From contig NC_135761.1 in assembly GCF_052425735.1 (NCBI RefSeq), positions 39,246,001 through 39,310,000 of the forward strand: DNA of 64,000 nt. Direction: 5' to 3'. The notes below the pieces were generated by a model. It was not told the origin of the DNA. It saw only the letters and a list, made by a program, of their open reading frames with translations, and did no database searches. Below, piece after piece: positions 22,571 to 55,345 of this stretch (within the stretch, counting starts at the first letter, position 1; each line of letters starts with the position of its first letter). The translations under genes and the position numbers were made by a program. The DNA is from Oculina patagonica. Lineage: Eukaryota.

Positions 22571-22789
22571 GTATATTTTTAATTTGTTTATAGGTTTTTT
22601 ATATTTTTATATGTTTTTCCCATGTAGTTTTATCTTTTTAAATTTGTTAAGTTTTTTTATAGTCTTAACTTTTATATACATTTTTAATTCCTCTATTTTT
22701 ACCTTTTGACCACTATGATAACAGTACTTTCAAGTACTGATGAGTTAATCATGTTTAAAGATTTGTTTAATGTGGCGAAAACAATGCTA

Positions 22790-23389: not shown

Positions 23390-23579
23390 GCGTACATGTT
23401 TAAAGATTTGTTTATTATTATTAACAAAGACAAAGCTGGAGAGTCTGGGAATGCTTTCGTAGCGAACAGACGTTGTTTTCGAGTCTCCGAAGAAGACCAG
23501 ACCAAATGAGAACTTACTTGTAATTTCATCGTCCAAAACATTCCCTGAAGTTTATATAAAGTTGTCTTAATGCAAAAGT

Positions 23580-31100: not shown

Positions 31101-31340
31101 TAACACCAGTCACGGGTGTCACAGGTAAGTGTTACGGCTGTCAAAGTGCTTAAACCAGTCGATCATTTGATCTTTGAAGTGCAGATAAAAGAACAACTTT
31201 TTCAGTAAATTACTGGGTAAACTATTGACTGTTAGTTTCTTTTGCAATGTACCTTTCTTCGGTTTTAGTTGTCGAAGTGAATAGCCTTTCAGCAGACAAC
31301 AGAATGACCGAACAATTGCTTTGCATCTTCGCAACATTGA
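25192..31340 (+). repeat. Copy 2 of ~6.1-kb near-identical direct duplication
   Basis: Same order of ORFs as 18570-24689, with scattered SNPs and small indels. Confidence 0.95.
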
Positions 31341-31537
31341 AATGGGCCACCATATTGAATTTGTAAATTCAAGCCCAGGCCTCTCGCAAATGTCGTCTTT
31401 TTTTAAAAAAACAATGGCCGCTGCAAAGCGAAAGGCCGACCAGCCAGGGATTCTGAACTTTTTTGCAAGAGTTAGATCAATTTTGTTGTTCAGTCATTGT
31501 TCCCTCTATCTTATACTCTTTCTCATTTAGATATAAT

Positions 31538-32411
31538 GGCCGCGGCCGCACTTGGCGAGTTAACGGAGTTATTTCCAATTAATCAATTAAAATTAACTGG
31601 GTTAAAAAAATGTCTAATGCGGCCGCGTATTTGGAGAGTTAACCGACTCTTAACCAAGTTAGCGGTTCCCATGGAAATTAATCAAAGAACAAAAGATTTT
31701 TTAACCGAGTTAGGTTAATTCTAAACTACCTTTCTGCGTGGTTTTAACCAGGTTAGTGGTTTCTTATCAGATTCGACTATTGTCTTGGTTGTCAAATCTG
31801 TCAATCTTCACCGTGTAAGATGAGATGTTCGAGGATTGATGTTTTTCATAACACGCAAACATGGCGGCTGGTCACAATTCGCACAGTTCGTGGTTTAATT
31901 CGTTATTTGCCCTTAGTACTAGAGAACTGGAGAGCCAGGGGAACGATTATTTAGTTCAGGAAGGGATACCGTGGTATCATCAGCAAGCTACTTTGGCTGC
32001 GGCTTCGCCGTATCTGACAAGTCTACACAGTGCATTTACGCCTGCAATTTTTGAAACACCGCATTCGCCTCAGTCATCAGAAGGCGAAAGTTCAAACTGT
32101 TCCACAGCGGGTTCCACAGGAACTTCTCAAACTCAAAAAAAAAAAAAACTGCATAAGACGAGAACGCATTGAAATAATACCCAAACAGTAGGAGAATGAT
32201 GGTACAAATGATAACGTGATCATGGAAGCCGGCAATTTTGCCTGTTTATAAATAGCACGTCACTTCAGTCTGGTTTTGATGCGGCCGCTTAAAAATATTA
32301 ACCGAGTTAGTTTTCGTATAAACCCTACTTTAACGGAGTTAAGTTGTGAGGAAATTTTTAACTGGGTTACTAGAAAATTAACCCAGTTAACTCTCAAGTG
32401 CGGCCGCGGCC
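31538..32411 (+). mobile_element. Non-autonomous PIF/Harbinger element retaining the 5' part of a probable Myb/SANT gene
   Basis: TIRs GGCCGCGGCCGCACTTG / CAAGTGCGGCCGCGGCC with 3-bp TSD AAT. ORF 31861-32172 ends KTRTH*NNTQT, resembling the start of a Myb/trihelix domain. Confidence 0.8.
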
Positions 32412-32424
32412 AATAGCAATTACT

Positions 32425-32620
32425 CAACCCTCCAAGTTTATTTTTTCCTAAGTGGCCATTTGGCCACCAACTACTCAAGTTTGGTCGCCAGTTAAAAATT
32501 TTAGTCACCAAATTAAGCTGATCTTTTCAATCTTTCCTCCCAATTTTAGTCGCCAGGCTGGCGACCTTGGTTCAAATTTAGTCGCCATGGCGACTAAAAT
32601 GGTCTTAACTTGGAGGGTTG
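32425..32620. mobile_element. MITE with 5-bp TSD
   Basis: TIRs CAACCCTCCAAGT / ACTTGGAGGGTTG with TTACT on both sides. The empty site is visible in the family copy at ~54065-54080. Confidence 0.85.
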
Positions 32621-32924
32621 TTACTGGGTCAGTGTGACCTTGAGAATTAGTTTTTGTAAGTGGGTGCTCCCATTAGGAGAGGACTGGTTACTTAATAATG
32701 ATTTGTGTTTGAAATAAATGCCATTAACTCAGAAAGCAAAGCATTGTTATTGCAGGTTAATATTTCATTAAATATTAAACTGATCTTATTTATTTTATAT
32801 TATTATTATATTAGGTAACTTTAATTTAATTGTAATGCTTTATTTTTTCGCTTAGTGTTTTTTGTTTTTATAATTTTCTAGGTACTCTGTAAATCCAAGA
32901 AAAAAAAAAGTTAATGTATGTATG

Positions 32925-33690
32925 TACAAATGCTTCCCCAAGATCCACCCGCTACACAAGATTTTCAACAGACACACGATCAAGCTCAGCTACTCATGTA
33001 TGCCAAACATGAAATCCACTATCGCATCGCACAACAAAAGCATTCTCTCAAATGTCACGCCAGCGCCAACTCAACAATCACGTGATGGGTGCAACTGCAG
33101 GAGAAAGAATGAGTGCCCTCTGGAAGGTCAATGTCTCCAAACCAATGTAGTCTATCAAGCAACAGTGACAAGCGAAACTTCCACGCAATCATACGTAGGA
33201 CTAGTAACAAACTTTAAAGACCGCTACAGAAACCACAATGCATCCTTTCGACACACCAACAAAAGAAATGAAACTGAACTATTAAAACACATCTGCACCC
33301 TTAAAGACGCGAAAAAAAGCCTATCAAATTAAATGGAAAGTGCTAAGAAAGTGCCAGCCATACAATAATAAATGCAATCTATGTCTCCACGAAAAGTTTA
33401 TTATTATCTGTAAAAAAGATCTTTGAAGCTTAAACAAGCGCAACAAATTAGCGAGTTCATGCCCCCATAGAAATAGATTTGTCCTCAAGAACTTTAAAGT
33501 AACGTAATCTACGCAACTGCTACTTAGCAACCATATTTTGAATATTTTGTATCTTGTATTTAACCGCCAGCATTCAAATTAATGGTCATTCGAAAAAATT
33601 GCCTGAAGAGTGTGGTCACCTTTTGACCATACGAAACAGAGCTGTTGCAATAAATCGATGGAATACTATTGAAGCCTGGAACCTTTTTAA
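32925..33690 (+). mobile_element. Penelope-like element 3' part (GIY-YIG endonuclease plus pLTR)
   Basis: KIFNRHTIKLSYSCMPN, CNCRRKNECPLEGQC, VVYQA...YVG...FKDRYRNH, then after a frameshift KCNLCLHEK...SSCPH. Inserted in a (TATG)n tract. Confidence 0.9.
33598..33651 (+). ncRNA. Type I hammerhead ribozyme
   Basis: ATTGC-CTGAAGA-GTGTGGTCA-CCTTT-TGACCATAC-GAAA-CAG-AG-CTG-TT-GCAAT. Intact core, 9-bp stem II, short stem III, GUU triplet, stem I ATTGC/GCAAT. Confidence 0.9.
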
Positions 33691-34509
33691 ATAATTTATG
33701 TATGAACGTATGTATGTAATTTTCTGTTTAATAAGAGATAATTTCAACTTTCCTATCTTCAAAGCAACTGAACAGATAACAAAATGCACACAAAGTTGTT
33801 TGCAGAAAATGAGAAAATATGCCCCCAGAATGAAGGAAAAAGCATTTATGAGCATCTCAAATCGAAATTTTCCCAGGGGAGCATGCCCTCGGACCCCCCT
33901 ACCAGCTTGGGCCTGTAGTTACATGTAGTTACACGCCCTTTGGCGATGTATATTGGTTTTACGCCTGTAACTTCCACAGCAATGGCTATACAAAATTATA
34001 TTGAGAACCCTGGTTGTTGCAGAGAGATTCTTGGAGAAAGTAAAAATAATCTGGCCGAGATAAATACAACTAAAAACAAACTTGTCATGCTAAATGAATG
34101 AAAAGCATTAAATGAATTGAAAAAAAAAAACAAATAAAAGAATTGAACAGTGAAATAACCTGAAGAAACATAAAAAGTAGCTTTGAGATTTTTAAACAAT
34201 TTTTGAGTAGCCTTCTCAGTTATTTTAAGGTTGCTTCCTCATCGTCAGTGGTTCATTTCGTGTGAACATTGTAAACAATATGTAAACAACAGTGATCATC
34301 TTACCTTGACTTTCGATCAACAGGGTTTCTTTTAATTTGTCAGTTTTGAACACAAAAGTTATACAAAGCAGCTTGTGTGTGTTCTATCAGCAGTGGAAAT
34401 TCCAACTAAGAGAAAAAAAAAGCAGTGTTACCTGTGCTCTGTGGCAGCTCTAAACTCATCTTTTTGTAAGCTAAACAATTTAAGGAAAACTGTAATTCTA
34501 TGATTAACA

Positions 34510-35233
34510 AAACTTGACATGCAAGGAAGGTATAGCACTAAACAGTTACATGCAACGATGGAAAAAAATATAACCTTCAAATTTTCTATGCACTTTCATT
34601 CTTGATTTTTTGACGTGTATAAATTCCATGTCACAGAAACAGAGACAATGTGAACACAGCAGAAGTCAGAATAATTCCATCAGAATACACAATTTTTCCG
34701 TTTCTAGTTATTCGAAAGCAACAGAGATCTTGATATTTACTATATCATGCTCAAACTATGCTCAGTCGAAAGCGTGGGGGGGGGGGCATGTTAGTAGAAC
34801 GCGCGAGTTGTTTTTACGAACTGATGCTTCGGACGTAAAACCTCATATAACTATTCATTTATGCTTATTAAAAACTCAAAAAGGCGTCTTCGAACAAGAA
34901 ATATGTGGCTTCAAACTGGAAAACGGTAGTTGCAAACCAGAAACAGTCGAAAAAGGGTATCCGGTCAGCTCTTCTAAAGTGGGTGGGTGGAACGCGAACG
35001 GACCGTGCGAAATCTCAAGCTCCCTGATTCGTTTTTAACTAGAAGACGGTTTGAAGGTAAACGCTAGTGTAAACGCGTACAACTGTGCTCACAGCTACCC
35101 TTTTACGAAAAGAACTGTGTCATAAAGAAATCAATTTTCTTACCTGGGGCTCTCTGGTGTGAAGAAATACCAGTGTAGATGCAGAAATGAAAAATATGGC
35201 GGCCAGAAAAATGTGACGCTGAGTAACCAGGCA
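34510..35233 (-). promoter_or_regulatory. Putative promoter / non-coding exon 1 / intron 1 start (left-facing), paralogous to 51350-51880
   Basis: 23-mer TGCCTGGTTACTCAGCGTCACAT (35233-35211), YY1-like GCCGCCATATT, donor CAG|GTAAG at 35144/35143, CpG-rich. Collinear homology with the right-facing copy. Confidence 0.6.
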
Positions 35234-38200
35234 TCATGCAGCCGCCCCTCCTCATGCCCGGGACCCTCCGCTTGTGCGACCCTGTGGAAAATTGGAGCAC
35301 TGGTCGTCCAGGAGTCCCGTGATCTGTGGAACGCACTGCGTAAATAAACTGCGAACAACGAAAACGCTTAAAGGAAGTTAATGCATTTTTTTCATGTTTT
35401 ATTAACTATATATTTATTTATTATTTGTTAATTAGAAGGAAGTGTCACCTAAAGATTACTAAACAAATTCACTGGTCAAATTTTAAGAAAATTGCATGTG
35501 TTAAACCATAAAAAGTTGATGTGTTTGAACGGTTGTTTTGCATTACAAATTTTAAATTTTCACGTAATACATTCATTCCTTTTGACACCTTTTGTAAAAT
35601 TATTTTTATCATCAAACACTTATTTCATCTTTGACTACGGTATCAATTATATACTTTTGGGAATGTTTGAAATTGAGTGCAATTTCTTATCTAGTGTGCG
35701 TTTTTTTGTAACGAGAGTCAAGGTTTACTTGTGAGATACTTGCAAGAAAACGGTTTTGTTTCACTATTGAACGACAAAGTGAATTCATAATATTTATTTC
35801 GAATTTATTCATTCCTAGGTAGCCTACACTATCAACCATTGTTTCAAGAACAAGGGACATACTTGTTTGCTTATTTATGATTAAATAGATCTTGACCTTT
35901 TTTACCTTAGATTGGTCAACCACGGATTCTTTCGTGAAATAACTTGTTTTCTGACCTTAAGTTCTTTTTATACACTTGTATTCGGTGATATTTTTAGCAG
36001 GAAACCTTGACCTTATTTTCCCACGTTCTGTAAGTGACAAAGAACCTTTTTAACTATTGTACAATTTTTATTAATTTTGTACACTTTTGTTTGAACAACC
36101 ATGCACGCAAGTATTCTTTTAAATTCGGCTTGTACAAACGACTGCTCTAAACTCGTAAACAACTTAGTATTTATTTATGGAAAGGGGTCGGACTGAAGTT
36201 ACCGAATAACACGCCCCTTCTTCTTCGAGTTTAGTGGAAAAGTTGTTGTTGAACTTTTCTAAACATTCTAACTGTACAACTGTCAAATACTTGTAACTAT
36301 TTTTGTTGCAGTACAACAGTGTTTGTAATTTTTATATTGCTCGCGCTGTTTTATTTTGGCCAGTTCACGTTCGGTTCGTAACGAAATTTTGGAAAGAAAA
36401 GTGTTTTCGACATCGCAATTAGCTCGAAGGTTTACCTCAAACGCGCAGTCGTACTACAACGAAAACTAACTGCACAGGTCATTACATAAGCCTAGTAGAT
36501 ACATCAAATTTGACGCTTTGACAGAGATTGACAGCTAGAAATCTGGCCACTTTAAAAGTGTGCGAGCAGCAGCTGCTTTAAACACGAGAGAGTCAGAACG
36601 TCATTGTCAGAGAAGGTTCTACACCTTAGTACAGTGTTTATTAAAAACGTTGGAACAAGGCAGACTGATGACTGTTTAAAAGTGGGAGCTGCTAGTCCCC
36701 CTTATCCCGCTTTTAACACATGCATTGCGAAATTATTAGACATAATAAAGAATGTAGTCGAGGCTTGCTTTGGCCAAAACATATAATAATTCCCAACTCT
36801 CTTTTCGCTTAGAATTATCGTAAAAATGCTTTTCTGGAGCCTGACCTTAAAAACGCAATTTGGAGGACAACGAATGAAAAAAAGATAACGAGCGCAAGAA
36901 AGGTCGTTCAACTAATACCAGCATACGAGTTATATGATTTAATGAGGAGTCTTGGGTCGTTTGCAGTTAGAACCCTCATAGAAAAAAAAACACGTGTATT
37001 AAAACACTCGTTCGGAATCTGTTTACGACAGTCCCATACACATAAAAAAATATTCAGCCTGGAAAACGAAAAATTGTTCTTCAGTAAATGTAAAAATATG
37101 GATGCCATTTTGACACGAATTACCAACCAGGGTACGACAGGAAACAGAACTGAGCAGATTGATGCGGAAAAGGGAAGGATACTAAACCGCTGAGAGAAAT
37201 CTGATCACAGATTACTGTTAAGGCAAGTAACACTTACGACAATTTTCAGTCGAATTTTGCAGAAAATACTGGATATAATAACAACTCGGCCTGAACGTGT
37301 TATTTTACGCGGGTTTGTACTGTATTTCAAACCCAACACCTCGCACGTGAATTTTGCAGAATAAACATGTTTCACCTAGACATACTTGTCATTGCATACC
37401 TATATATTTCATAATACTAATTAATACATATTTCTTTTCGTCTTTTTTGGAAAAAGCTGCCGGGACAACAGTTACCTCGCCTTCAACGTAGATACATAAA
37501 AAAAAAAGTAAAGGCGGACAGTTGTCTTCAAGGTTTTCGGTCATTATTGATAAATGGTTAGGCTGAAAGCCTCATTTTAAAACGCCAAGACAAGTGTATC
37601 TCTTCGGAAACGCCAGCTGGAATTTCAAATCAAAGAAATGTACGTATTGCTGCCTTCATGAAAATCATAGTTGCCTTTTTTGCGTACCCATTCGTCATTT
37701 TTTTCTCTCCGAAAGAAATCTCCGATTTGTCGAAAATGGCAGGCGATCATAAGTATTCATCACAAATATTTACCAAAACCGAAACGGTCTGTTGGGTGCC
37801 CGTAGAAGAATTTCGTCTCAGATTCTTGAATCTGCGGACATTACAAAACGAGCACATCGCTGTCCGCATATTGAACCACATCCACACAGAAAACATCGAT
37901 AACCACTCATAAAGAACAATTGGCTAGATTTATCGAAACCGGGTCAAAGAAAAGTGAGGCCAGTATTCTTAAATATGTACGTTACTGTGCGCCAAGTTGG
38001 CTTAAAACGAAGCAGGAAAAAAGAACAACAGCGCTGAAAGGTAGAGGAGAGAGAGGAGAAGAGAAAAAAAGACTGACATTCCCTCAAGTTTTTATATCGT
38101 AGAGTTTAGAGATAGTTTCTGGCGGGGGAAAACGCGTTTACAGCGATTTCTACTTAAGACATTGAAAATTTTATTAACCTGGTTTTGATAAATCCAGACA

Positions 38201-39934
38201 TTACTATATAAACAGAAGGAATGACAAGAAACTAGGGGATCGTACTTAAAAAATAATTTTTCTTGTTGTTCAGATCGTTCTAGGTCACTCAGTTCTTGTT
38301 TAAGCTCCTTTTTGCATTTTTTCCTGAAAGTGTTCTTTTAAACCCTTTCATTTTTAGTTTTTCACCTTGTCAAAGAAAAAAAACCCAGCAAATCAGGATA
38401 AAGGAGAGTGGCCGTTGTATATTGGACGGTATTTAACCCTACCCTCCACGATCATATCTTGCACGAAATTTAGTAGGCGTTGTTTTTCTGTGGCATAGTA
38501 TAGAAGTATAGACATAAGTAGTTACGCAACACTTTCTCGCGATATACTTCGGAACATCCCACTTATCAGTTGAATTTTTTGTGTTATACACTCTCGCTTA
38601 AAGATAGAATTAAAACTTTGTTGAAGGGTCAAAACTACATGACTAGGAAAAAATACAAGTGACCGTCCCAGGGGATACTCCTCCAATGGCCTATGCGGGG
38701 AGGCTCCGCCTGAAAGGGGTACCTATTTCAGGCTTCAGGTAAATGAGATGTTTTCTTTAAAGTGCTTTATGTGAGGGTCTGAATGGGGGTACCGCGATAA
38801 CACAAAACACTTCATTTTTTGGCTCTGTAACATGAAACAGTAAACTTTTAGGCATTCTAACACTAACAGTAAAAAATTCACTGTAACAGTAAATTTTCTC
38901 CAAAAATCAAAACAAAACAAAAACGGCGCCATAAAGGCCGCTTTTATTTTGTTTAGTATATGAAGAAGTTTTCGGCCATTTTCGGACGATTTCCGATCAG
39001 TTCGGAAGAAATCCGAAGACTACCAAATATTCCCAAAGACTACTAGAGATTTCCGGAGATATCCGAAGACTACCGAAGATGGCCGAAGACTACGGAAGAT
39101 TTCCGGGGAAAAATTCGAAAATGTTCTCTAAGTTCACAAGTGATCTTATCCGATTTTTTAAGAGCAGATAAGAATTTACAATGCTAATTTTTTTTACGAA
39201 AAACCCTCCAAACGCTTCACAGTATTTTTTCCAGAAACAGTAAACATTAAAAAAATTGGCCAATTTAACAGCATACCCTCTTATGTTAGAGCGGTTTTCA
39301 AATGAGTGTCGTAAAATCAAAACCAAAGCAATCATTCTGGCCAATCAAAACAGACACAAACAATCCAGTAAACCAATCAAAACGCAAAGTAAATACTTTT
39401 GGCCGACGCGAAGCGCGGGAAAACGTATGTGAGCGAGTCACGATTGGCTTTGGTTTCACCAGGAGCCATAATCGGGGACGGAGACCGTAAGCGCGCGACT
39501 GAGGTTGTCCCCATGATATGGAACAATTGTGCTATTTTTAGCACAAATTGCGCCATCTTCAACGTCATAAACCGCGCGAATACACGCAAAATTGCGCGGA
39601 TTCTCGCGTGGATCCGCTCGGATAGAACCGGAGTTGCGTGTTCAGTGTCACGTGAGTCGCGAAACCATTCGAGTCTGCACGAAAAGCTGGAAAAGTTGAG
39701 AACAAACAAGCAGCTATTTCAAAGAGAAATAGTGTTTCGTTTCCTGATTGCGGAAGGGTAAGAATAGTGTAACACTTAAGGAGAGGTGGGTTTGGGGTTT
39801 ACTTTAATTTGGAGAAGGTCCTAGTGTATGTTAAATTTGCCGAATTTATGCACGAGTGCAAAATGAAAAGAAGAACTTCATATTCAGTAGTAACTTAAAT
39901 TCTCATTTTACACCTACAGTCGATTTTATGTAAA

Positions 39935-42900
39935 GGAGACATAAACTACGTCCTGCTGCAGTTTGGCTTTCAAGAGTTCAAGTAACACATAAATATTTCT
40001 CTTTATAGAAATAGCATATGTCTTTATCTCCAAATTAAGTTAAGTGAAGGGAGCTTGCCTTTATCGTTTTTACTCATCCAGTGGAAATTAAAATGATTTT
40101 TTTATTTCTGCAGAACACGTTTTGCTTAAAAATGGCACCCGATAGCATAACTTTGGATGTTACATGAATGGAAAAATAACTTACAGAAAATATTTAAATA
40201 TATTCCTATCAATGTGGGGAAACATGAAACCACAAGAGTAAAATGCAAGATCAGAGTAATGCAATTAATTTAAATGGTTTATTTTTTGAAACAAACAATC
40301 CTAAAATAAATCAGTTCCATAAATAAAGTGTTTTGTGACTATTGATCTCTGATAAAATGCAAAACAACACTTTAATCGAAGATGAAATTATTACCTTTTG
40401 ACAAAAAGCTTGAGGTATATACTTCTCTGAGTTGATCACATGCTCAAATCAAATAAATGCCAAATTCATACAAACCAAAACCCTGGTCGACAAGAACAGA
40501 GATAAGCACACTGTTTCGAAGCCATTACTTCAAAATGAAATGCCTGTTGTCACTTTACAAAGACACGTAAACAACCAATGCAAATTAATGTAAAAAGCTA
40601 CCATACACAGATTTTTAACAAGGATTTTTAATTAAGCAAAATTCAAGTTTAAAGAAAGTTATATGTTGTATATAGTCGTACCAGGATTGTATTTTGCTCG
40701 ATCCGCGCTGCACGCTCTCCCGGCAAATATAAAATTATCTCCACAGAATAAGACACAGCCAAGTTGCTTCTGTTGTCAGTGTAACAGCCTTGCATTGGTA
40801 ACACTGATAATAACGATTTGCATTTTTGGCGATACTGTGGAGTTTCGATCAGACCGCGATGGCTTTGAATAATCCAAATAATGTTTATATCATTAATTTA
40901 ATCTCAGAAATCTGCACCAGCAGTTGCAACGGTAGTTAATATTGAGCGTTACATCAACTAAGGAGACGAATTTAGTTCGACACGGCAGTTGCACACCTTG
41001 CTATACGATACTGTCCATACAAAATTTAAACTTTGAGCAGAACTTATCAACTTTCCGTGCAGACTCGAATGTTTTTGCGACGCCGACGTGACACTGATCA
41101 CGCAATTCCGGGTACATCCACGCGAGAACCCACGCAATTTTGCGTGTATTCGCGCTGTTTGTGACGTCGAAGATGCCGTGAAATTTTCCTGTACAAATAG
41201 AATAGGGCAATCGCCCACATTTATACATTCCTCTGTTACATGTAGTGAAATTAACTTTGTAAGTCACCTGCAAATATGCACTTCTCTTTGTAGCGCACTT
41301 AAGCTCTACCGTGCGAGCAAACAAGAGATACGCCAAGTCATCCCGTTTTTCTTTGCGCTTGTAAAGACTGGTTGGTGGAAATTTACTTCCGTTTCAGAAT
41401 AACATTAAACGCTACGAGAGCTTTCTCTAGTTTTCTTACAATACATCGCTTTAGTCAAACTTAAAACCATTGCAGTCGTTAGATATTTCTGTTTGCAACG
41501 AATCTAAATTTTTTTGGTCATGCTGAGGAATATATTTCCGATATTTGAAGAACATGACTGTTTTTACGAAATTAATTGCCATCGGTCATACGTATTTACT
41601 TTGTGGTTACGACCGTTCTTGTGATTGGATAGCAGCCCCCCGTGCGAGCAAACACGACAAGTCATCCCTTTTTTGTTTGCGCTTGCAAACACTGATTGGT
41701 GAAAATTTACTTCCGTTTCAGAAAATCGCTAGAATGTTTACTTAACAATTAAACGCTACGAGAGCTTTCTCTAGTTTTCTTACAATACATCGCTTTAATC
41801 AAACTTAAAACCATTGCAGTCGTCAGATATTTCTGTTTGCAACGATTCTCAATATTTTTTTATCATGCTGAGAATATTCTTTCCGATATTTGAAGAACAT
41901 GTTTTTACGAAATTAATTGCCTTCAGTCAAACGTATTTACTTTGTGGTTACGACCGTTATTCTGATTGGATAGTAGCCCTCACTGTGTAAATAGTTCACA
42001 TCGAAGCCAAAATAATACCGTATCGTTTCTGAGGAAACGAAACAAAAAGAAGGCAGTCAAGTTCAGTGAAAACCTCAAATTTTGTATGGATAATATTGTA
42101 AACCAAGCTGTGAAACTGCCATGTCGAACTTAATTCATCTCCTTGATGTAAAGCACAAGATTAACTACCGTTGCAACTGCTGGAGAAGTTTTCTGAGATG
42201 AAATTCGCGATGTAAACATTATTTGGATTACTCGAAGCCATCGTGGTCTGATCGACACTCCAGACCAAGCATCGCCAAAAATGAAAATCGTAATTATACA
42301 CTGACAACAGAAGCAACTTGGCTGTGTCTTATTCTGTGGAAATAATTTCGTATTTGCCGGAAGAGCTTGCAGCGCGGATCGAGACGAACGAGCGAAATAC
42401 AATCCTGGTATGACTGTAAATAAGCTTACTTATTGATGTACTTTAATTATAAATCCCGGTTTTAAATCTCGGTTTTAATAAAGCTTTTTTTATATTAATA
42501 TGCCCTGGATGTTTACGTGTCGAAGTATCACAGGCATTTGATTTGCAAGAAATGGCCTCAAAACAGTGTCTTTGTGCTTATCTCTGCTATCGGCCAGGGT
42601 TTCGGTTTGTCTTGAAAGTCAGGCATTTATTTGATTTGAGCATGTGATCATATTTAGAGAAGTATATACCTCAAACTTTTTGTCAAAAGATTATAGTTTC
42701 ATCTACGATTAAAGAGTTGTTTTTCATTTTTAATCGGAGATAAGAAGTCACAAAACTTTTATTCTAGAACTGAATAATTTTGGTATTTTATGATTCCAAA
42801 AATAAACCTATTTAATAATTTAAATTAATTTCATTACTCTCATCTTACACTTTACTGTACTCATTGATAGGAGCATATTTAAATATATTCTGTAGTTATG

Positions 42901-43150
42901 TTTTCATTGATGGGACATTCAAAGTTATGCTATAGGTAACCATTTATGCAAAAAGTGTTCTGCAGAAATAAAAAAATCATAATTTTAATTGGATGAGTAA
43001 AAAAGGTGAAGGCAAGCACCCTTTCCTAAACTTAATTTGGAGAGAAAGACACATGCTATTTCTATAAAAAGGAAATATTTAATATGTGTCACTTAAACTC
43101 TTGAACACCAAACTGCAGCAGGTCTAAGTTTAATTCTTCTTACATAAAAT
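39935..43150. repeat. Internal inverted repeat, arms ~39935-41035 and ~42075-43150
   Basis: CTGCTGCAGTTTGG.../...CCAAACTGCAGCAG. ORFs 40663..40872(+) and 42130..42402(-) are mirror peptides (PQNKTQPSCFCCQC). Confidence 0.9.
41309..41980. repeat. ~335-bp tandem duplication in the loop of the palindrome
   Basis: CGTGCGAGCAAACA...GATTGGATAG(C/T)AGCCC repeated from 41310 and 41641. Confidence 0.9.
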
Positions 43151-46100
43151 GGACAAGTAGTATACTAAAAAAGATGTTATGGATAGCACATCCATGATTT
43201 TTGCCAAAAATAAATCTATGATTTTCAATAGGTGTCTTGCATGTCTTGCATCACCAAACAATATTGTTTGCTATATGGTTCTTCTGACATCTTTCTCATT
43301 GGTAACCTTTGTCAAAGTTCTGTGATATGTACTGAATCTTTACTTTTGATGAATCTTTTGAACTATGTCCAGTTTTGTCACAAATTAGATCTTATAATTG
43401 GGAGTGATTTGTAAGTTTTTTGTCACTTCTCCCTTATTGTATGGCTATACTGATTTCTTTATTTTTGGCCTACAATTTCCTTCAGTTTCCTCCCTTCCAA
43501 CTAGGAAAAATTCTGAAGCTGCTCATAATAAAGAAGTAAGAATTCATCCAGTTTTTGTTGTTTATAACAAAAGTAAAAGTGAAAGGTGAAAAGGTTATAC
43601 AACTTCAAACTTTTTAGCTTGTATAATCTTTCTGGTAGAATAGCTATAACAACACTGTTTGAGTGGCATTAGGAACTGAGTCGGTTAAGTGTGACGAATC
43701 TGAGCTTCACTTTGGATGTATATATATTCCTCTTTTGAACGGAATATAAGCACTTTGCCTTCATTTCATTTAACATACAGTTAGTCTTGTATTTCATGAT
43801 GCTAATATAATGATGCATTTTTATATGTTTATTTAGTAATAATGTCAATAATATAACAGATGCTCATCTTTTAGTGCTTTAAACCGCAGATTAGTTTGAC
43901 CTGACCCTAATAGTGCTTTTTTTTGTTTCTTTGTTTTACTTCTGTTTTGTTATTGTTATCAGTCCTATCCCTAGGACATTTAACAATTTAAGAGGCCATT
44001 TTAACAGTACCCAAGATAAAACACAAGGCTAATTAAATGGTATGGGAAGTTGAATTCCAGTTTAACAACCATAATAGTTGTAATAGTTGCATAACCAGAC
44101 TGCACTCAATTTCTGTAGTCCAAGAAATTTGATACTGTAATGTACAATTTTGAATTTTCAATACACAGTTTTCCCTGAGAGAGAGGAATTTTTTTTTCTC
44201 CTGTGACTTCAGTTTATCTTTTTGGCTCACTGATTGCAATTTAATCTTTAAAATTTGTCATCCCTGAGTAAAAAAAAAATAACATTAATAGCAATAGTTG
44301 AATGCTCCCTGCTTTCGAAAACATGGCCAAAATATACTGCAGCTTTTAAGAAATTGTTTTTAATTATTCCATGTTATCTAACAAAGTAAGTACATATATG
44401 ACCAGATGAAAAGTTATTGCTGCATTGAAATTAAAATACAAGAGACTTAAAGAAAAATTTCGGAGCAAAATCAGTCAGATAAGGAACTTGAATGGGGCAA
44501 AACATTTAAGAAACATGTAAAGATATTCCTAAACTACTCCATTACTCAGTATCAAAGTCCTAGCTATAAACTTGCGAGGCTGCTGTACAACATATAAAAG
44601 CATCGAAGAAAGAACGACATGATGTATACAGTCGTATTTCGGCAAAAATATGGTCTCTGTTTGCCCCTGTCGATCTTTATGCTTTGCGTCTCCTTGTCGC
44701 TGCGCTCTAAAACGAGTAAGTAAATGTCTTGCGCCTCCTCGTATACGACATCTCCGACGCGTTTTCACGCTGTTCACGACTGAATTTGTCGGGAAACAAT
44801 GCTACTGCAGACATCCGAACCACTAGAATCACCCTCACTTTCATGATCACTTTCAAGGAAGTGCTCAAGGAAGGATTGATGTAACTGAGGAGTAGAAACA
44901 GATGAAAAAAATCCAATATCTGCTTCACTTGAAGAGGTAATTTTGGACGCCATTTTGTTTGTTTTTCTCCGCGCGACGTCCTCGCAAAAATCCTCGCAGC
45001 AGTACGCGCGCGTACCACACGCGATGGCGCAATTTGTGCTAAAAATAGCACAAATGTTCCATATCATGGGGACACCCCCCAATACTGAAATGGCACGCGC
45101 TTACGGTCTCCGTCCCCGATTATGGCTCCTGGTTTCACTTCTGATTGGTTAAGAAAGTGGCGCGAGATTTTGAGACCAATCAGTAAGCGAAGTAATGCAA
45201 AACCAAAGCAATTACGAATTACTTCCGACACTCAAGTGAAAATCGCTCTAATACATTGCGAACAAACACACCCTATCATTTCATTTTATAAAGTGAAGCT
45301 AGTTACAAATGACAAGAACACAATCTATCTTAGGCATGTGTCACGTCCCTTCGGTATATGAAAGGGACACGTTTTTCAATAAAAGGTGTGCGAAAGAGGT
45401 ACTTTTCTGAAATAGTATACGGGATTAAGCCTCGGGGCGGAGCCTCCCCGTATGAAACTCTTGTGAGTGCCTTCCTCCCGGGCGCGTGGGATATTTCATA
45501 ATATTCAGTAAAAAACTATTAATGGAATATTTCAATTCCCGAGTTTTGATTGGTTAACAGGAAATATCATAATTTTTTGGGTGTTTTAAGTAAAACAATT
45601 ATTCCACTCACGCTTGTTGGATATCTATCTAGCCACGCGCCTCGTTCGCTATCTACCATCTCAATTCCAACTCACGCTAGTGAAATAATTGTTAAGTATA
45701 TCACTCGAAGGCGTTGCAGTACAGCATCTAGTTTGTATCATGTTTTAGCTTATTTAGAAGGAGCGATATCTCTACCTCTGTATGCTTCACGTACCTGAAG
45801 CAATAAAAGTTTCCCCTTTCGGGTGGAGCCTCCCCGAATAGGCCAGGCTTTCCACCCAGCCAATGTCTATGGTTACATTCTCTTCCTATCTAACTTTCTT
45901 ACGGATCTGTCACTGTGCCCCTGACAAGAATAGCAGACTTTCTGCGTGTAAACTTGCATATTTTTCGAGATCCACTTTTGCCGAGTAGTTTTTCGTAGCG
46001 ACTGAGCTCGCTAATCTATTATCTATCATTTTTATTGCTCTCTAAATTTTATACATTTTTAACGCCAAAATATGTCACGATTTACGCCCGGAAAATGGCG

Positions 46101-47074
46101 CCTTCCAAAATATTTCTGAAACTTTATGTTATTTATAAGAACACAACTGAGGGAAAATATTTGCGTCAACAAAAAAACATTGTCGCGGTCCATTCAAGGC
46201 ATTATTTTCGAATATTTGTAAACGAAAAATTGTCGAAGAAGACGTACCAGGAGTTGCTCTGAGGAAAAATATAAATATCTATGGCTTCACGGTTTTAACT
46301 CGGGAATAAAAAGATTAGTGAAAAGAGTCCATGTCCTGTAGTCATTTAGTCCATGTCCTATAATCACTTAAGTTCCTAAGTTCCTAACGCGTTGTGCTTA
46401 TTGCCTCTTTTATTCTTTTATGCATTTTTCCGTACGTCTCCGTTTTAAAAAATGTATCGTGGTTTCAAAACACCAAACCCCCTAAATTAGGTTTAAAGAA
46501 ACGTCAATGTACAAGTCTTAAAAGTTTTTCTTAACTCTGGGTTTCTTTATACTTTTACCTTATATTAATGCAGCAAAAACAAAATATTAAATAAGTTTTG
46601 ATCTTTTTCTTCTAATTAAACAATTACCGAAATATAAAAAGTCTAAATACACTTGTTAAGATATGATCAGTTTACGATAGAAACTTGCCCGTGTTATGGT
46701 CAATTAAAGAGCTCGGCTTTTAGAAGAATCTTCGAAGAAGACGCACAAGAGTTGATCTGACGAGTAAAGAGCGTAGTGTTTATTTCTACTCTTGTGCATT
46801 TCTCTCGGCTTTGCACAAATCCTTGGTTTCCTAAAGCCCGTGCCGCGACAGCTCGACCCCGAGGTATCCACTGGTGCGTTGGTCATTTCCGGGACAAACT
46901 TCTAACATAAAGTGTAAAGTGCGAAGAACAGTACGCAACAAAATCGATCTAAAAATAAAGGAGTACGTTATAGCGCAAAAACGTATCACTTATAGTCTAT
47001 GCATTTTTTTTCTAGGGACATTTAGTAAATATGGGCCTGTCCTTGTCCGCTAGTATTTCAATTAGGCTACGGTA

Positions 47075-47389
47075 CCGTTTTTATTCGATTAAGCGCCCAA
47101 CCCACCCCCTAAAAAAGCGAAAGGAGTAAACTAAAAGGAATGAAATTGACTAAGTACTACCAAGAGACTATCCCTAAGACTGAGCTTTCTTCAGTGATTC
47201 ACGAAATTTTCAATGCGGAACAGTTAAAATTCAGCTTTGGTACATATTAACGTTTTGTTATTATTTATTGTTTTCTTGCAAAATAAGAGTACTGCTTGAA
47301 AAAAAAATAGTGAAAATGTAATAAGCGCCCACTGTCAAGGTCCAAAAATTTAATAAGAGCCCACAGGGCGCTTAATCGAATTAATACGG
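47075..47389. mobile_element. Tc1/mariner-type MITE
   Basis: TA-CCGTTTTTATTCGATTAAGCGCCC ... GGGCGCTTAATCGAATTAATACGG-TA. Confidence 0.85.
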
Positions 47390-47400
47390 TATTTCATAAA

Positions 47401-48968
47401 CATACATACATACATACATACATACATACATACTTTATTTAACGTGGAAAAAAGTACACACTTAGCTGTTAGCTAGTTTACAGGTGCTCCACGATTAAAA
47501 GTTTAGTATTTACAAAAGTATTTACATCAAAACAAAGGGTATAAAAGTATTACATCAGACTATTTTAAAATGGTTAAAAAAAAAAAAAAAAAAAAACAAA
47601 CAAACAAACAAACAAACAACAACACCATCTAGCTAAATTAAGATTCCTAAAAAAATATATATATATAAATATAAAAATCCTATCTAAAAGCGATAAAATA
47701 TAATTATTAAACATTGAAATCAGTTTGTCTAATCTTTTTCAAAAAGTCCTTTGAGCCTGCCATGGAACGAATATCACGAGGTAGCATGTTCCAGTGCTTT
47801 GCTGCAGCATAACGCCACGACTTAAGACCATATCTGGTAGTGTTCACTTTAGGTATGGAAAGATTAAAATTACCGCGAAGATTGTACGCTGTTCTCTTTT
47901 CAGTTATAAGATTTTTGAAGCTGGATGGTGCCCTGCCTTGAATAATATTGTTCACAGTCAATAACATATCTTGAGTGCGACGATTTTCTAAGGTTGATTT
48001 TGATCCGATACGCCGCAAGAGCGCTTCGTACGACGAGGTCTTGTCGCTGTACACAAATCTCAAGGCCCTCGCATTTGTTCTTTCCAGTTTTTCTATATTT
48101 CTTCTTCCACAGTGATACCAAACTTGACTACAATAAGAAAAATAAGGTAAAATAAAAGCTCTATACAAGGATTCCTTCGTATTACAAGGTAGAATGTTCT
48201 TTAACCTGCTTAGAGCGTTTATTTGGCTCCCCACCTTGCGACAAATGTCCGCAATGTGTGAATCAAATTTTAGTTTATCGTCTAAAGTTATGCCCAGTAA
48301 TTTTATCTCCTTGGATACTGGAATTTCTTTACCCTCACATTCGATCTTGATGTCACACTGACTAGCATTTCCTAACACCATGGCGTTATATTTTGTCGGG
48401 TTGGCGATCATACCGTTTTGTTTGAACCAAGAGCTGGCATTGAACAGATCTTGGTTAATCATGTTTTCAACTGCGCGGGGACATTCGTTTGAGGCATGTA
48501 GATTGGTGTCGTCTGCAAAGCTTAGTAAGCTGCTCTCGTTTATAGCATAGGCCATATCGTTCATAAAAATATTAAAAAGAAGCGGTCCTAATATTGACCC
48601 CTGGGGTACACCACTACGAACGACATTCCACGATGAAAAACTGTTTCCCAGTTTGACTCGTTGGTAGCGATGTGAGAGATAGCTCTGAAGAAGGGACCAC
48701 GATCTTTCATCCAGTCCGTAAAATCTAAGCTTTTCCAACAGAAGATCGTGAGGGATACAGTCAAATGCCTTGCTAAGGTCCAGTGTAGCAGCACCAATAA
48801 AGTGGCTTTGATCAAGTTTTTCTTTCCACTCTTCGGTAAGTGTTAATAGCGCCGCAGAGCAGCCATGAAATTTCCGATACGCGAACGTATAGTCGTGGAA
48901 AATGGTATCAAAATACGTACTCATCTGTGTATGGATAATGCGTTCAAACACTTTGTCGAATGCGGGCT
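47401..48968 (-). mobile_element. 5'-truncated CR1/L2-group LINE with (TATG)n tail
   Basis: RT ORF followed by a 3' UTR, AATAAA and a (TATG)8 tail at 47401-47432. Confidence 0.9.
47707..48968 (-). CDS. Non-LTR reverse transcriptase (C-terminal ~420 aa of ORF2, open frame)
   Basis: KVFERII, AYRKFHGC, LDLSKAFDCIPH, GVPQGSILGPLLF, FADDT, KLLGITLD and YSCSQVW-like motifs. The endonuclease domain is missing. Confidence 0.92.
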
Positions 48969-49445
48969 TTGTCCAACACGCTGTCCTTTTTGTGTAAAGG
49001 TGTAATCTGACCATTCTTCCACCCTTCGGGGACTTAAAACGCGATTTAAAAATCCGACAGATCAATCCTAAGCTTCGAGTGTTATTGCAGAAGGCTTTTT
49101 CCTTTGCCTTATAGAAGCTTCTTACCAAACAACAGGTGCACTCAACTAAAGGTTTTATTTTTCTATAGGTGTGAGAACGCCGTTTTTATAATCGTCCTAT
49201 TTCAGCGTTGTAAAATGACATTTGTCTGTTACGCTTACTCGAGTTTCATATTCGAATAAACGCTACGTCACGATGCGGCGTTGAAATCAATGGAGGCTTT
49301 AAACCGAATAACAGTCTGTTGGGTGCTCCTGAAACAACATTTAAGTTACCAGCCATGAATAAATTTGCTCGGGGATTTGGTCTTGGAAACGAAAAAAACT
49401 AAAAGTGGGTCGAGATGAGAAAACAAGACCAGGAAAACAGGTGAC

Positions 49446-50352
49446 CAGGGCCGTAAGCAGACTTCAAACCAAGACGAGGCAAACTAGTCCGAGCGCCGAA
49501 GGCGCGAGCCGCTAGGGGGTCTGGGGGCATGCACCCCAGAAAATTTTGAAATATAGAAGTCTTTATGCACCGAGCTTCCTCCTCCCGCTTGCTCTTTCTG
49601 CTCCTTCATTTTTCTTCCTGGACAAAGGTGTAAGGGACGACTGGTTCTCATTTTTCAGCAATTTGAAGCTATCACATTTTGTACTTACAATTAATAGCAT
49701 AAGTAATGAATCCACAAGAGTAATCGACATACATCGATTTTAGATAGACGTCTTAGGTAACAATACCGTTTTGAACTGAATTGTTCGCTAATATAAACAG
49801 ATGTTCAGCTACTATAAGTTCTTCGTTCGTGATGTACTTAAATTGCTTATGTTCTTTAACCTTGATACAATAAGAAACATAAGACCATAGCGGTTTTCCG
49901 CGTCAAACTAATACACAAAGAACAACTTATATCATTGCCATATCTGAGAAATATAAGACTAAGAAGTCTCTTTTTACTGTCACAATTCTGACACATATTC
50001 GAGCTTATGGCACCTAAATGACCTTTTTTTCATAAAATTCACTTGCCTTAGCTGGCTTCATATTTCATAACCCAATGACAAAAGATTTCTAAGGATTTTT
50101 TTTTCCAACTTTACCCATTTTTACAAAAAATAATTTAGTGTCACAATTCTGACACATATTCGAGCTTATGGCACCTAAATGACCTTTTTTCATAAAATTC
50201 ACTTGCCTTAGCTGGCTTCATATTTCATAACCCAATGACAAAAGATTTCTAAGGATTATTTTTCCAACTTTACCCATTTTTACAAAAAATAATTTAGTGA
50301 AAATTAAGACAAGGCAAGTGCCTCGTCTTGCCTCATGCTAGTTACGGCCCTG
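49446..50352. mobile_element. CAGGG-terminal MITE with 5-bp TSD and internal 161-bp tandem duplication
   Basis: TIRs CAGGGCCGTAA / TTACGGCCCTG with GTGAC on both flanks. Duplication 49978-50138 / 50139-50299. Confidence 0.85.
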
Positions 50353-50399
50353 GTGACGATCTATTAGCTTCAGAGTGACTCCGTTCTTTGACAAACGGC

Positions 50400-50800
50400 G
50401 TTTTCCAAACGAACAATGGCTGTGGGCAAGCGTATTTTTCTGCAATATAACAGCGACAAACCGTTGAGTGGCGCCGGATCTCTTGAAGACCTGGATCAGT
50501 AACTTAGTTAAAAGAGAAAATATAGACGGGAAACTGATCCTGACGGCTAATGCGATCAAAAATAATAAGCGGATAAAAAGCTAAATTATGTTGAAATATT
50601 ATTATTTATTCTTTAATTTTAGTTTTTTCTTATTAGCAACGACCCTTTTACTTTTCTCACATTTTTTCAGCCTAGCCCCTGAGGAAGGTTTGTATTGCAA
50701 ACCGAAATAAAGGGAAAAGTTTATTTAATTTATATAAGTTTTTATCCACTTTATTATTTTTGACCGCTTTAGCCGTCAGGATCAGTTTGCCGTCTACATT
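50400..50800. mobile_element. Penelope pLTR remnant with inverted partial copy and mutated hammerhead (50675-50715)
   Basis: 50523-50583 is the reverse complement of 50735-50796. CCC-CTGAGGA-A-GGTTTG-TATTG-CAAACC-GAAA-TAAA-GGG core. Confidence 0.7.
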
Positions 50801-51349
50801 CCCCAAGGACGATGTTTGAGTCTTTCCCAAAGACTCCTCCCTAGTTCGAATGCAAGATGGCGCTCGCCAACTCAGAAACGACCACTCAAAAGCGACATAA
50901 CTTACACCTATGCAAGAACGCAATATGACACTTTGTTGTGCGGTATGAAAATATGGTCAAGAGACGTTGAAAACCGTCAGGAATTACGAGAAAGCGTCAC
51001 TGGATATTGCGTTCTTGCAGAAGTGTAAGATATTTAATATTTACCCAAAATTTCTTGATTAGAAGCGACATATCGGCTTCCGTACGTACTGAGGGGGCAA
51101 AACGGGAATTGAGATTTGGGCAAATTGTCGGCCCCTGGCAAAAACCTCTGACGGCAGATTATGTACTTCTGTCGACGGTCAAATTTGGTAAAACACGTGA
51201 CGGCTATATCCGTGTTGGATCCGCGGTGAATAACGAACAAATAAACAGTAGAACTGGGACTCACTGTGACTTGGAAAACTGGGAAAATAGGAAAGTGGGA
51301 AATGGAATTTTACCCCCTCCTCCCCCAAACGCGCGCTCTGTCACCATCT

Positions 51350-51880
51350 TGCCTGGTTACTCAGCGTCACATCAGTTTGCACTTCGGGATCAGCCCACAT
51401 TTTCGCAAGACATAGCGTGGCAGTTGTTCATTCTAGAAAGAGCTCCAAACTTCAGGTAAGCACATAAGTTTGTTTGTTACATAATTCTCTTCAAACTAGG
51501 AGAGTTACAGTAGAAACTGCACCCCTTTACGCGACTGTCTTGTATGCAAACCGCTTACCTCCTCGAGCTAGCGCGCACGAGGTTCGCACCCCGATCGAGT
51601 TTGCAACGTCGTAGTTCGAGTTCGATCAGACTAAAAAGTTTCACCAGGTTTAATCTAAAAGCACGAGTTCGTATGTTTTCATTTCTGAACTAGGAATGAT
51701 CCTTACTCACATTACTTCGATGCGGGTTTTGACTAAGTATGGTTTGAGTCTGACATTGCGAAATTTAACACATTACAAAACTCGAAAAAATCAGCCTGAT
51801 TTTCCACGTGAGATCTTACGATGGTATCACAAAAAGCTTAATATCACTTGTTTATCGCTCCAGTACACTTGCATGGTAAG
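51350..51880 (+). promoter_or_regulatory. Putative promoter / non-coding exon 1 / intron 1 start (right-facing), paralogous to 34510-35233
   Basis: Same 23-mer at 51350-51372, donor CAG|GTAAG at 51455/51456, CpG-rich, collinear homology downstream. Confidence 0.6.
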
Positions 51881-52894
51881 CAAAAACATCCAACAGTGTT
51901 GTATGTAAAATATTTTTTATTTTTTGTTGTTGTTAACTGATATTATTTACAATTTTGTACTGGTATCTTGTCATGATATTTTGCTAGGTATCTTTGCCTT
52001 CTTTCTCCATAAAATCTTCCTACATATGGTAACATCTTATTCATTGGCCATATAAATTTTCTTCTGAGTTATTTTAATATAGTTTTTGAGAGAATCAGTT
52101 TGCGTCGGTGTTAAGCGCGAATTGTTGGTGCACATTTCTAAACATGTTCAAGGCTTTGTTTGAAAAGTAAATTCAACCTCAACACAACTGACAAATTTGA
52201 AAAGTATTGTAAATGTTTGTGTAGAAAAAGTTATTGTATGCAATCCTCAACCGTTACATTTACTTCAATTGTTTGTTTTCATGTCGACAAAAACACTCAC
52301 TTTTGGGTCGGTTTATGCAAGTATAGCTGAGTGCGTCATGTTGAGTAAATTTGACTTCAACACAACAAATCTGTGTTTTTGTTTAAAACACCGATGATTA
52401 ATGCGGTTGTGTGCAGGACTAAAGACTTCGAAAAGCATTTCTGGTGTTCTCCAAATCAGGCGGTAACTGGTAAAATTTACCGCTTGTAACAAGACTTGTT
52501 ACTGCTTAGAAATCTTGAAAATTCTACAAGTAAATAACAAATTAATGCCACTCATTTCACCCTCATAGTCATGATCCAAAATATAAAATAACAGATTGAA
52601 AATAAACAGCGACAAATGCAATATTTATTTACGAATTTGTGTTTCTGAATCTCCAGGGCTGATACCTATCGATTAAAGAGCAAGTTTTGCTGGTCTTTCT
52701 CACTTCTTGGTAAGTGCATATCTGTTGCTCGGCAGTTTCCACGATGAAGCGGCAGCAATCCTTGCTGAAAACAATCACAAATGCAGAGGTAAAAATAATT
52801 TAAGAAGTAGTGAGAAATGTTACTTAAGTAAGTAGTTCATTTTTCTAAAACATGCAAAACGCAGAAAATAGGTGAATGCTTAGTTGAACGTAGT

Positions 52895-53687: not shown

Positions 53688-54687
53688 CAGAGGGTTCAAT
53701 GGAATTTTGTACAGCCGTTGCTGTGGTAGTTACAGGGGTAACACCAATAAACACCGATATACATTAAAGACAAATTTAGTAAATGCTTTTTCCTTCATTC
53801 TGGAGGCATATTTTCTCATTTTCTGCAAACAACTTTGTGTGCATTTTGTTATCTGTTCAGTTGCTTTGAACACAGGAAGGTTGAAATTATCTCTTATCAA
53901 ACAGAAAATTACACTGCAATATTTAATGAAATATTAACCTGCAATAACAATGCTTTGCTTTCTGAGTTAATGGAATTTATTTTATACACAAATCATTATG
54001 AAGTAACCAGTCCTCTCTAATGGGAGCACCCATTTATAAAAACTAATTCTCAAGGTTTCACTGACCTAGTAATTGCTATTACCGGTATATCCAAATGAGA
54101 AAGAGTATAAGATAGAGCAAACATTTGTGAATGAATGAATCTGTACAACAAAATTGATCTATCGTATTATTTCAATTATAAGGCGCACGGTTTTTTCAAG
54201 GAAAATCTGTTTTTCTGTGGGAAGTTTTTGCCAAAATTGGGGTGCGTCTTATAGCCGAGTATTTTCGCCCAACAAATCTTATGACCGCCATTTTACCGGA
54301 ACATTAATAGAAATAAAACAAGAAAAATGAAAACGCTTAATTTTGGTCATTGACTTTTATAACAAGAAAACAGATATAAGAATTAGCAAGTTTCAATGTA
54401 AAGTTTATTGTCACGATTAAACAAGTTGCGAAGACGCGAAGCAATTGTTCAGGCATTCTGTGGTCTGCTGAAAGGCTATTCACTTCGACAACTAAAACCG
54501 AATAAAGATACATTGCAAAAGAAACAAACAGTCAATAGTTTACCCAGTAATTTACTCAAAAGGTCGTTCTTTTATTTGCATTTCAAAGATCAAATGATTG
54601 ACTGGTTGAAGTACTTTGACAGCCATAACACTTACTTGTGACACCCGTGACAGGTGCTACGGGTTACGGGGTCAACTGAGAATCCTG
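53688..54687 (-). mobile_element. Second copy of the CAGGG-terminal element of 31074-34012 (without its nested inserts; has its own insert at ~54163-54420)
   Basis: Reverse complement matches 31074-31335, 31472-31535, 32412-32776 and 33716-33996. ORF 54408..54641 mirrors 31119..31337. Confidence 0.9.
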
Positions 54688-54823: not shown

Positions 54824-55345
54824 CGTCAGTTTGTGCCACAACATCTCAATGGGATTGACGTCTGGGCTTTCTGCTGGGATCTATCACCAGCTGATTTCGT
54901 TAAACTCCAAATAATTCTTTGCCAGATTTCTTTCGTGCTTTGGATCATTGTCTTGTTGGAATCTGTGACCTTCAAGAAATTTCTCCTGGATGAATGGAAC
55001 AGGAGTTTGTTCAAGAATTTCTTTGACATAGAATTTGGCATCCATGTTGCCAACAAACAGGAAGACCTTCATGGCACCATGCTTGGAAATCCTGGTCCAG
55101 ATGTGTACTTTGTATGGATGCTTGGGGCAACCCTTGAACTTTGCTTGCTCAAGCTTGCGGCTAAAAAAGATCCTGGCATGGTTCTTCATGTGTACTGAGC
55201 ATTCATCTGTCAATATAATGCTGTTGAATGTCTCTCTTTTTCCCTGACACTTGGAAGCAGAACTGCAACTGTTTCACCCTGTTTGGCTCTTTGATCAGCT
55301 GGCAGTACAGTATTTCGTTCCTGTCTGGACCCAGCCAGGCTTCTT
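54824..55345 (-). pseudogene. Tc1/IS630-family transposase fragment
   Basis: YCQLIKEPNRVK...ILTDECSV...PKHPYKVHIW...RFQQDNDPKH...PAESPDVNPIEMLWH (DDE triad). Confidence 0.92.

Follow-up and report, generated by a model that had tools for sequence, protein, structure and literature searches.

What are the two short, similar sites that lie in opposite orientation within a 64-kb stretch of the genome of the stony coral Oculina patagonica (contig NC_135761.1, positions 39,246,001 to 39,310,000; the whole of this stretch is referred to below as the window)? An original prediction, made from the sequence, described site A (minus strand) and site B (plus strand) as diverged, outward-facing copies of one promoter-exon 1-intron 1 module, and saw in this module a reusable cassette that initiates clusters. 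As judged from their alignment, sites A and B are homologous, old copies of one non-coding unit, which consists of a 23-bp element, an ATG-free exon piece of 90-106 nt, a consensus 5' splice site, and ~300 nt of intron. The favored explanation, a tentative one given a little less than an even chance, is that the pair arose by local duplication of a unit that forms the 5' end of short non-coding RNAs, which are spliced. The main explanations can be ranked, from the most to the least probable, as a local 5' unit, an unclassified low-copy repeat, the remnant of a palindrome, a PIWI-interacting RNA (piRNA) cluster cassette, and the 5'-untranslated region (5'-UTR) exons of coding paralogs.

The window is AT-rich (38% GC), is packed with repeats, and contains a single run of Ns (24692-25191). 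Its positions 41109-63729 are identical to a public locus (L001) on chromosome CM126638.1 of assembly GCA_052425735.1. An open reading frame (ORF) of 150 amino acids (aa) across copy B has one match within a collection of 5.8 billion proteins, the O. patagonica hypothetical protein ACROYT_G015185.

Each copy contains one exact match to a 23-mer, TGCCTGGTTACTCAGCGTCACAT (Table 1). As the original prediction stated, the two matches are shared exactly, and they are the only ones in the window, even when 3 mismatches are allowed; 0 are expected. Similarity in the remainder of the unit was measured against nulls consisting of real segments taken from the same 64 kb (600 or 300 draws). The rest of the exon piece together with the donor yields a z score of 6.4 (0 of 600 nulls), the first ~100 nt of the intron yields 4.9, and a middle intron block containing GTTTGCAAC, AGCAYSAGTTCGTA, and GACTRAGYATRGTTTGAG yields 5.2-5.8 (0 of 300 nulls). 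The collinear patches that had been proposed over several hundred bp are therefore upheld for these three sequences, but not for the distal part (34729-34510 in A and 51761-51900 in B), where similarity around AAAAAATCA and CTTGCATG is at the level of chance (z 0.6-0.8), as it is everywhere beyond. A comparison of A with B by nhmmer gives an E value of 2e-9 over the first ~250 nt and of about 1 for the remainder. Under ordinary gap costs (five schemes), 56-67% of the aligned columns are identical, close to the 60-65% originally estimated by eye. The homologous unit thus extends from 35238 to ~34740 in A (minus strand) and from 51345 to ~51760 in B (plus strand), or ~0.4-0.5 kb, and the two copies face outward. 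Its 5' edge is sharp and is located 5 nt ahead of the 23-mer. Upstream of the 23-mer, A and B have no similarity (z -0.7 to 0.35), and consequently there is no promoter within the shared module. This part of the prediction is not supported; in copy B, moreover, the annotation places the start of exon 1 at 51109.

Within the unit, conservation of the 23-mer and the donor far exceeds that of the sequence around them, in agreement with the prediction and as is expected under constraint on a non-coding function. The longest exact runs between the copies, apart from the 23-mer, are 8-9 nt. When the match probability is estimated from these other exact runs of the alignment, the 23-nt run is an outlier across the five gap-cost schemes (P about 1e-4 to 7e-3); an over-gapped, and hence over-fitted, alignment of A and B with 78% identity gives P 0.26 for this run. 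After the 23-mer, the best-kept piece is the donor octamer, CAGGTAAG (CAG/GTAAG). This octamer is rare: with both strands counted, the 64 kb contain only 4 occurrences, and the donors of copies A and B make up half of them. In both copies the short exon piece ends at this donor (at 35144 and 51455), as predicted, and is devoid of ATG. The exon pieces differ by 16 nt in length (90 versus 106 nt), so that the reading frames relative to the donor differ between the copies. With ATG absent from both exon pieces, with frames that differ, and with spanning ORFs that lack homologs, the unit contains no conserved ORF. Taken together, the alignment suggests that the 23-mer and the donor are under constraint for a non-coding function, while a very short conversion tract may be an alternative source of the same conservation pattern.

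The 23-mer opens with UGCCUGG, and these 7 nt are able to base-pair with the donor region, which reads CCAGGUA in A and UCAGGUA in B; thus, the two best-kept pieces are complementary to each other in both copies. A conserved RNA structure in exon 1 was considered and rejected: this 7-bp pairing is the sole one, it is accompanied by no compensatory changes, and by a rough estimate it is not beyond chance. A microRNA or other hairpin gene was likewise rejected, as RNAfold, applied to both copies and both strands in four windows, gives no hairpin of ~60-80 nt around the 23-mer. A literature search for pieces of the 23-mer returned unrelated primers only, and collections of metagenomes, prokaryote genomes, and viruses contain no exact copy of the 23-mer. 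The lone external 19-mer match lies in a bacterial contig with 60% GC and was set aside as a chance match.

The donor of copy B is used by a public gene model, ACROYT_G015185 (P0001). This model spans 2.6 kb, has 3 exons with good splice signals, and takes 51455 as the donor of its first intron. Its exon 1 starts at least 241 nt upstream of the copy-B 23-mer. Its stop codon lies inside a hAT-like transposon, 2.3 kb downstream of the module, and is followed 17 and 34 nt later by the poly(A) signals AATAAA (53746) and ATTAAA (53763). A neighboring model on the minus strand (41001-41357, 118 aa) starts with AGA, which is also a non-ATG codon. As regards the annotation, both models look like 5'-partial ORFs that were called on assembled transcripts. 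If this is the case for P0001, RNA would extend over no less than 241 nt ahead of the 23-mer, which would place the 23-mer inside exon 1 and not in a promoter.

ATG-free first-exon pieces, strong donors, and CpG-rich islands would also fit a pair of protein-coding paralogs in which the modules are first exons within the 5'-UTR and the coding exons lie further downstream. However, tblastx between the arms reveals no conserved coding exon, and indeed no conserved coding sequence apart from the hAT-like element, which accounts for all of the strong matches. The P0001 ORF has no homolog but itself among the 5.8 billion proteins, the ORF over copy A has no relatives in the protein collection, and no gene model is present in 31001-41000. 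A pair of coding paralogs is thus the least probable of the main explanations, and very unlikely. Of ten ORFs of the window that were looked up by exact match, none is present in the protein collection.

Among non-coding genes, a spliced-leader RNA gene was also rejected. Spliced-leader RNA genes occur in some cnidarians (Hydra), and, like the unit, they have a short non-coding exon that ends in a consensus donor. Unlike in such genes, the exon here, 90 or 106 nt long, is diverged outside the 23-mer (~60% identical), no Sm-site-like motif is seen by eye directly downstream of the donor, a tandem array is lacking, and no snRNA-like Rfam match was found. Over the whole window, Rfam gives no match at gathering thresholds, and ARAGORN finds 0 tRNA genes. 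The likeness to paralogous long non-coding RNA (lncRNA) loci includes the absence of an ORF, a short conserved 5' block, a conserved first donor, and exon and intron sequences that decay fast, as well as a 5' region rich in CpG and a transposon that provides the end of the transcript. In contrast to such loci, copy A is unannotated, the conserved block may lie inside exon 1 and not at the start site, and transcription of the pair is putative.

The sharp 5' edge brings up a different possibility, namely that A and B are copies, from different subfamilies, of an unclassified interspersed repeat, whether solo-long terminal repeat (LTR)-like, short interspersed element (SINE)-like, or otherwise non-autonomous. 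The 23-mer would then be the 5' terminus of the element, selected for the sake of the mobile element, and the donor would have been carried along and exonized by chance in copy B. Homology does indeed set in abruptly where conservation is highest, and the unit, ~0.45 kb in length, is discrete and has no homology in its flanks. Like solo LTRs and non-autonomous repeats, it begins with TG and is found in a CpG-rich setting rich in transposable elements (TEs): the window carries fragments of a long interspersed element (LINE) and of hAT-like, Tc1/mariner-like, DUF7869-like, and GIY-YIG-like elements, and its CpG-rich peaks are mostly repeats. Unlike such repeats, the unit has no matching 3' terminus and no internal retroelement sequence. 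Neither the 23-mer nor its halves have an inverted partner in the window that could form a terminal inverted repeat (TIR), even at 3 mismatches, and the 3' limit of the unit shows neither a target-site duplication (TSD) nor a tail. One TSD candidate, the 5-mer CATGA at both ends of copy A, was rejected; it is unmatched in copy B and not significant. The unit also contains no ORF and has no similarity to tRNA, 7SL, 5S, or snRNA (ARAGORN reports 0, and permissive Rfam scans of both modules return noise). Searches for TIRs, TSDs, and, by tblastx, coding sequence thus bear out the earlier statement that no TIRs or coding remnants lie behind the module.

The number of copies was sampled by nhmmer in 192 kb in all, that is, the window plus 128 kb made up of five other O. 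patagonica loci and one ENA contig. No third copy of the unit was found, which speaks against a dispersed family with many copies, at least one as dense as in the window. The "reusable" part of the prediction is not supported, since the window and 120 kb of other O. patagonica DNA yielded these two copies only. However, the hAT-like transposon also has 2 copies in the window and none in the 120 kb, and the obvious TEs of the window are missing from the 128 kb as well. The sample therefore has low power on copy number, and the lack of further module copies proves little. On balance, an unclassified repeat is considered unlikely, though it ranks directly behind the local 5' unit.

Whether the two copies might instead be parts of something larger depends on what lies between them. 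An inner inverted repeat (38687-41045 versus 42059-45845, 74-82% identity), centered near 41.55 kb, surrounds a spacer of ~1 kb with a 330-bp tandem duplication (85%, 41309-41979). A CpG-rich repeat of ~150-250 bp recurs at 39.5, 41.1, and 45.0 kb. The collinear chain of the inner arms scores 1074 in the inverted orientation versus 236 for the direct control, and the modules are themselves inverted and roughly symmetric about the same center once a young LINE (47410-49185) is discounted. They could be what is still recognizable of the outer part of a single palindrome, both large and ancient. However, no similarity is left in the 3.4-3.7 kb from the inner arms to the modules (z 0.23), nor in the sequence just upstream of the modules; consequently, a single large palindrome is not supported. 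In addition, pieces of the inner-arm repeat recur at 39.5, 41.1, and 45.0 kb and may be TE copies. The palindrome is accordingly regarded as improbable.

More local inverted duplication, or pairs of TEs, is found at the left end of the window, where an inverted pair of 1.1 kb (97-1195 and 5094-6191) is 93% identical. Short self-palindromes are present near this pair, at 1207-1305 and 2500-2645.

Downstream of the modules, the arms share patches that are 91-96% identical and inverted to each other (BLAST). These patches were considered as downstream exons and rejected, since they belong to a hAT-like element with TIRs (CAGGGTTCTCA...), the flanks of the two copies differ, and the arm-A copy has a 7-bp TSD. 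They are independent insertions of a hAT-like non-autonomous transposon, located 1.2-2.3 kb downstream of their respective modules in the same relative orientation. The arm-A copy is broken by two nested insertions (~33715-32799 and ~32621-31535), one of which carries a weak GIY-YIG-like ORF. Transposons of the hAT type tend to hop locally, which fits two copies 20 kb apart.

The TE-rich flanks and the outward orientation of the copies are also the starting point for the idea of a cluster. In Drosophila, the 5' region of flamenco contains an RNA polymerase II (Pol II) promoter and a spliced first exon that head a single-strand piRNA cluster, and the conserved 5' exon piece with its donor recalls this arrangement. 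By analogy, each copy would be a promoter-exon 1-intron 1 cassette from which a long precursor, made from one strand, would run through an array of antisense TEs, with the 23-mer or the exon licensing the transcript. As in a flamenco-type cluster, a first exon with a strong donor heads a TE-rich stretch, and a few TE fragments are antisense: the three classifiable ORF fragments, at 32874-33329 (plus strand) in arm A and at 54887-55273 and 59895-60194 (both minus strand) in arm B, all run against the adjacent module. However, three of three is not significant (P 0.125), two of these hits fall short of the Pfam thresholds, and most ORFs are unclassifiable. In contrast to flamenco, the annotated coral transcript is short and polyadenylated, no promoter sequence is common to the copies, only two of which are known, and separate spliced models are annotated on the opposite (minus) strand beyond copy B. 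Since the sole transcript model is a short, 3-exon RNA of 2.6 kb that ends at poly(A) signals, the "cluster-initiating" part of the prediction is not supported, and nothing here shows that either copy starts a piRNA-type cluster. The comparison is between a cnidarian and an insect and implies no homology. A paper on piRNAs of Nematostella offers no usable detail on promoters or cluster architecture. A piRNA-cluster cassette is judged highly improbable, and slightly more so the specific proposal that the 23-mer, exon piece, and donor would together form a cis-acting licensing cassette in a stony coral, which would label two precursors running outward for piRNA processing, as a counterpart of the first exon of flamenco, and would be reused at other cluster heads.

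In the favored explanation, both copies would supply the 5' portion of short non-coding RNAs that are transcribed by Pol II and spliced. The 23-mer, kept by selection, would be bound by a sequence-specific protein, as either a promoter-proximal or intragenic DNA element or a 5'-exonic RNA element, and the first donor would be kept because productive expression needs splicing of the first intron. The hAT-like transposon would provide the poly(A) signal at which the copy-B transcript ends. As to its origin, the pair would most likely go back to an inverted duplication, small and local, in a region rich in TEs and prone to duplication. Non-coding RNA genes usually show conservation of this kind, limited to splice sites and a short patch at the 5' end. 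Counted in favor of this explanation are the unique pair of 23-mers, the bounded similarity, the outlier run, the rare donor octamer at matching positions, and the absence of ATG and of conserved coding sequence, together with the splicing of the copy-B donor in P0001, the CpG islands at both copies, the other local duplications, and the lack of a third copy.

Several observations weigh on the other side. A mobile element, too, would be expected to show homology that begins sharply with a conserved block at its 5' end. The 3.4-3.7 kb that separate the inner repeat from the modules retain no trace of a larger duplication. Evidence of transcription is indirect; P0001 may be a poor model, given its non-ATG start and its naming as a hypothetical protein, and copy A has no model at all, with no gene called in 31001-41000. 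With exon 1 of P0001 beginning 241 nt upstream, the 23-mer need not be a promoter element. Finally, most of the remaining CpG peaks in the window are located at repeats, and the islands at A and B are therefore weak evidence for promoters.

Table 1. Coordinates of the two copies of the unit and of features around them (window positions)
Feature	Position	Strand	Remarks
23-mer TGCCTGGTTACTCAGCGTCACAT, copy A	35211..35233	-	Exact match; near 5' limit of homology, which starts at 35238
23-mer TGCCTGGTTACTCAGCGTCACAT, copy B	51350..51372	+	Exact match; near 5' limit of homology, which starts at 51345
5' splice-site octamer CAG/GTAAG, copy A	35139..35146	-	Last exon base 35144
5' splice-site octamer CAG/GTAAG, copy B	51453..51460	+	Last exon base 51455; donor used by public gene model
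Exon-like stretch, copy A	35144..35233	-	90 nt, ATG-free, 23-mer through donor
Exon-like stretch, copy B	51350..51455	+	106 nt, ATG-free; 3' part of annotated exon 1
7-bp pairing, copy A	35227-35233 with 35141-35147	-	23-mer start with donor
7-bp pairing, copy B	51350-51356 with 51452-51458	+	23-mer start with donor
Proximal intron, copy A	34740..35143	-	Weak but significant collinear similarity to B (z 4.9-5.8)
Proximal intron, copy B	51456..51760	+	Weak but significant collinear similarity to A
GC/CpG-rich island, copy A	34600..35500		CpG observed/expected up to 1.47 (window median 0.72)
GC/CpG-rich island, copy B	50600..51900		CpG observed/expected 1.1-1.28 (window median 0.72)
Exon 1, NCBI model ACROYT_G015185 (P0001)	51109..51455	+	First codon TTG inside open frame
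Exon 2, model P0001	52657..52709	+	CCAG/GG ... TTG/GTAAGT
Exon 3, model P0001	53656..53729	+	Runs into hAT-like element
hAT-like non-autonomous transposon, arm A	31074-34011	-	In pieces; perfect 7-bp target duplication CAACAAC on both sides
hAT-like non-autonomous transposon, arm B	53691..54687	+	~1 kb, degenerate ends, no clear duplication; supplies end of copy-B transcript model
GIY-YIG-like ORF, arm A	32874-33329	+	Antisense to module A
Tc1/mariner-like fragment, arm B	54887-55273	-	Similar to Sleeping Beauty catalytic domain, E 0.001; antisense to module B
DUF7869-like fragment, arm B	59895-60194	-	Antisense to module B
Three NCBI "hypothetical protein" models	54885-63729	-	Spliced; over degraded transposon ORFs (Tc1/mariner-like, 54887-55273; DUF7869-like and related, 56.3-62.2 kb)
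LINE, 5'-truncated	47410-49185	-	Intact reverse transcriptase ORF of 473-492 aa, RVT_1 E 7e-28; (ACAT)n tail 47400-47433

The annotation of the region beyond copy B (54885-63729) was evidently not repeat-masked (Table 1). In a Pfam search of 30 ORFs, RVT_1 alone passes the threshold. The LINE to which this ORF belongs has a copy with 97% identity on another chromosome (CM126643.1, L003), from which it is taken to be young, and one with 92% identity in an ENA contig (L008); its best named homolog is an "RNA-directed DNA polymerase from mobile element jockey" of Exaiptasia. Further TE-like ORF fragments are present at 9435-9701 (plus strand), 16790-17206 (plus strand), and 3163-3444 (minus strand), with one weak match to Transposase_21 (E 0.007). 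By eye, one of these is DNA polymerase B-like and one is GIY-YIG (Penelope-like); Pfam gives no match for either. A direct repeat of 6.1 kb with 98% identity (18570-24689 and 25192-31340) abuts both sides of the 500-N gap exactly, and it has the appearance of two contig ends whose overlap was left unmerged, as a duplicate due to haplotypes or assembly, and not that of a genuine tandem duplication. Tandem repeats are found at 14264-14523 (three units of 86 bp, 97%) and at 49973-50299 (two units of 160 bp, 97%).

What the pair means for the coral depends on which explanation holds. The finding would be of wide interest only if the piRNA-cluster explanation were true, and geometry is its sole support here. 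If the 23-mer is the end of an unclassified repeat, the finding just adds an entry to the coral repeat library. If, however, the 23-mer is under selection, it would be a candidate regulatory element from a coral genome in which descriptions of non-coding elements are few, and the pair would provide a natural test, as two copies exist in which only the 23-mer and the donor have been kept.

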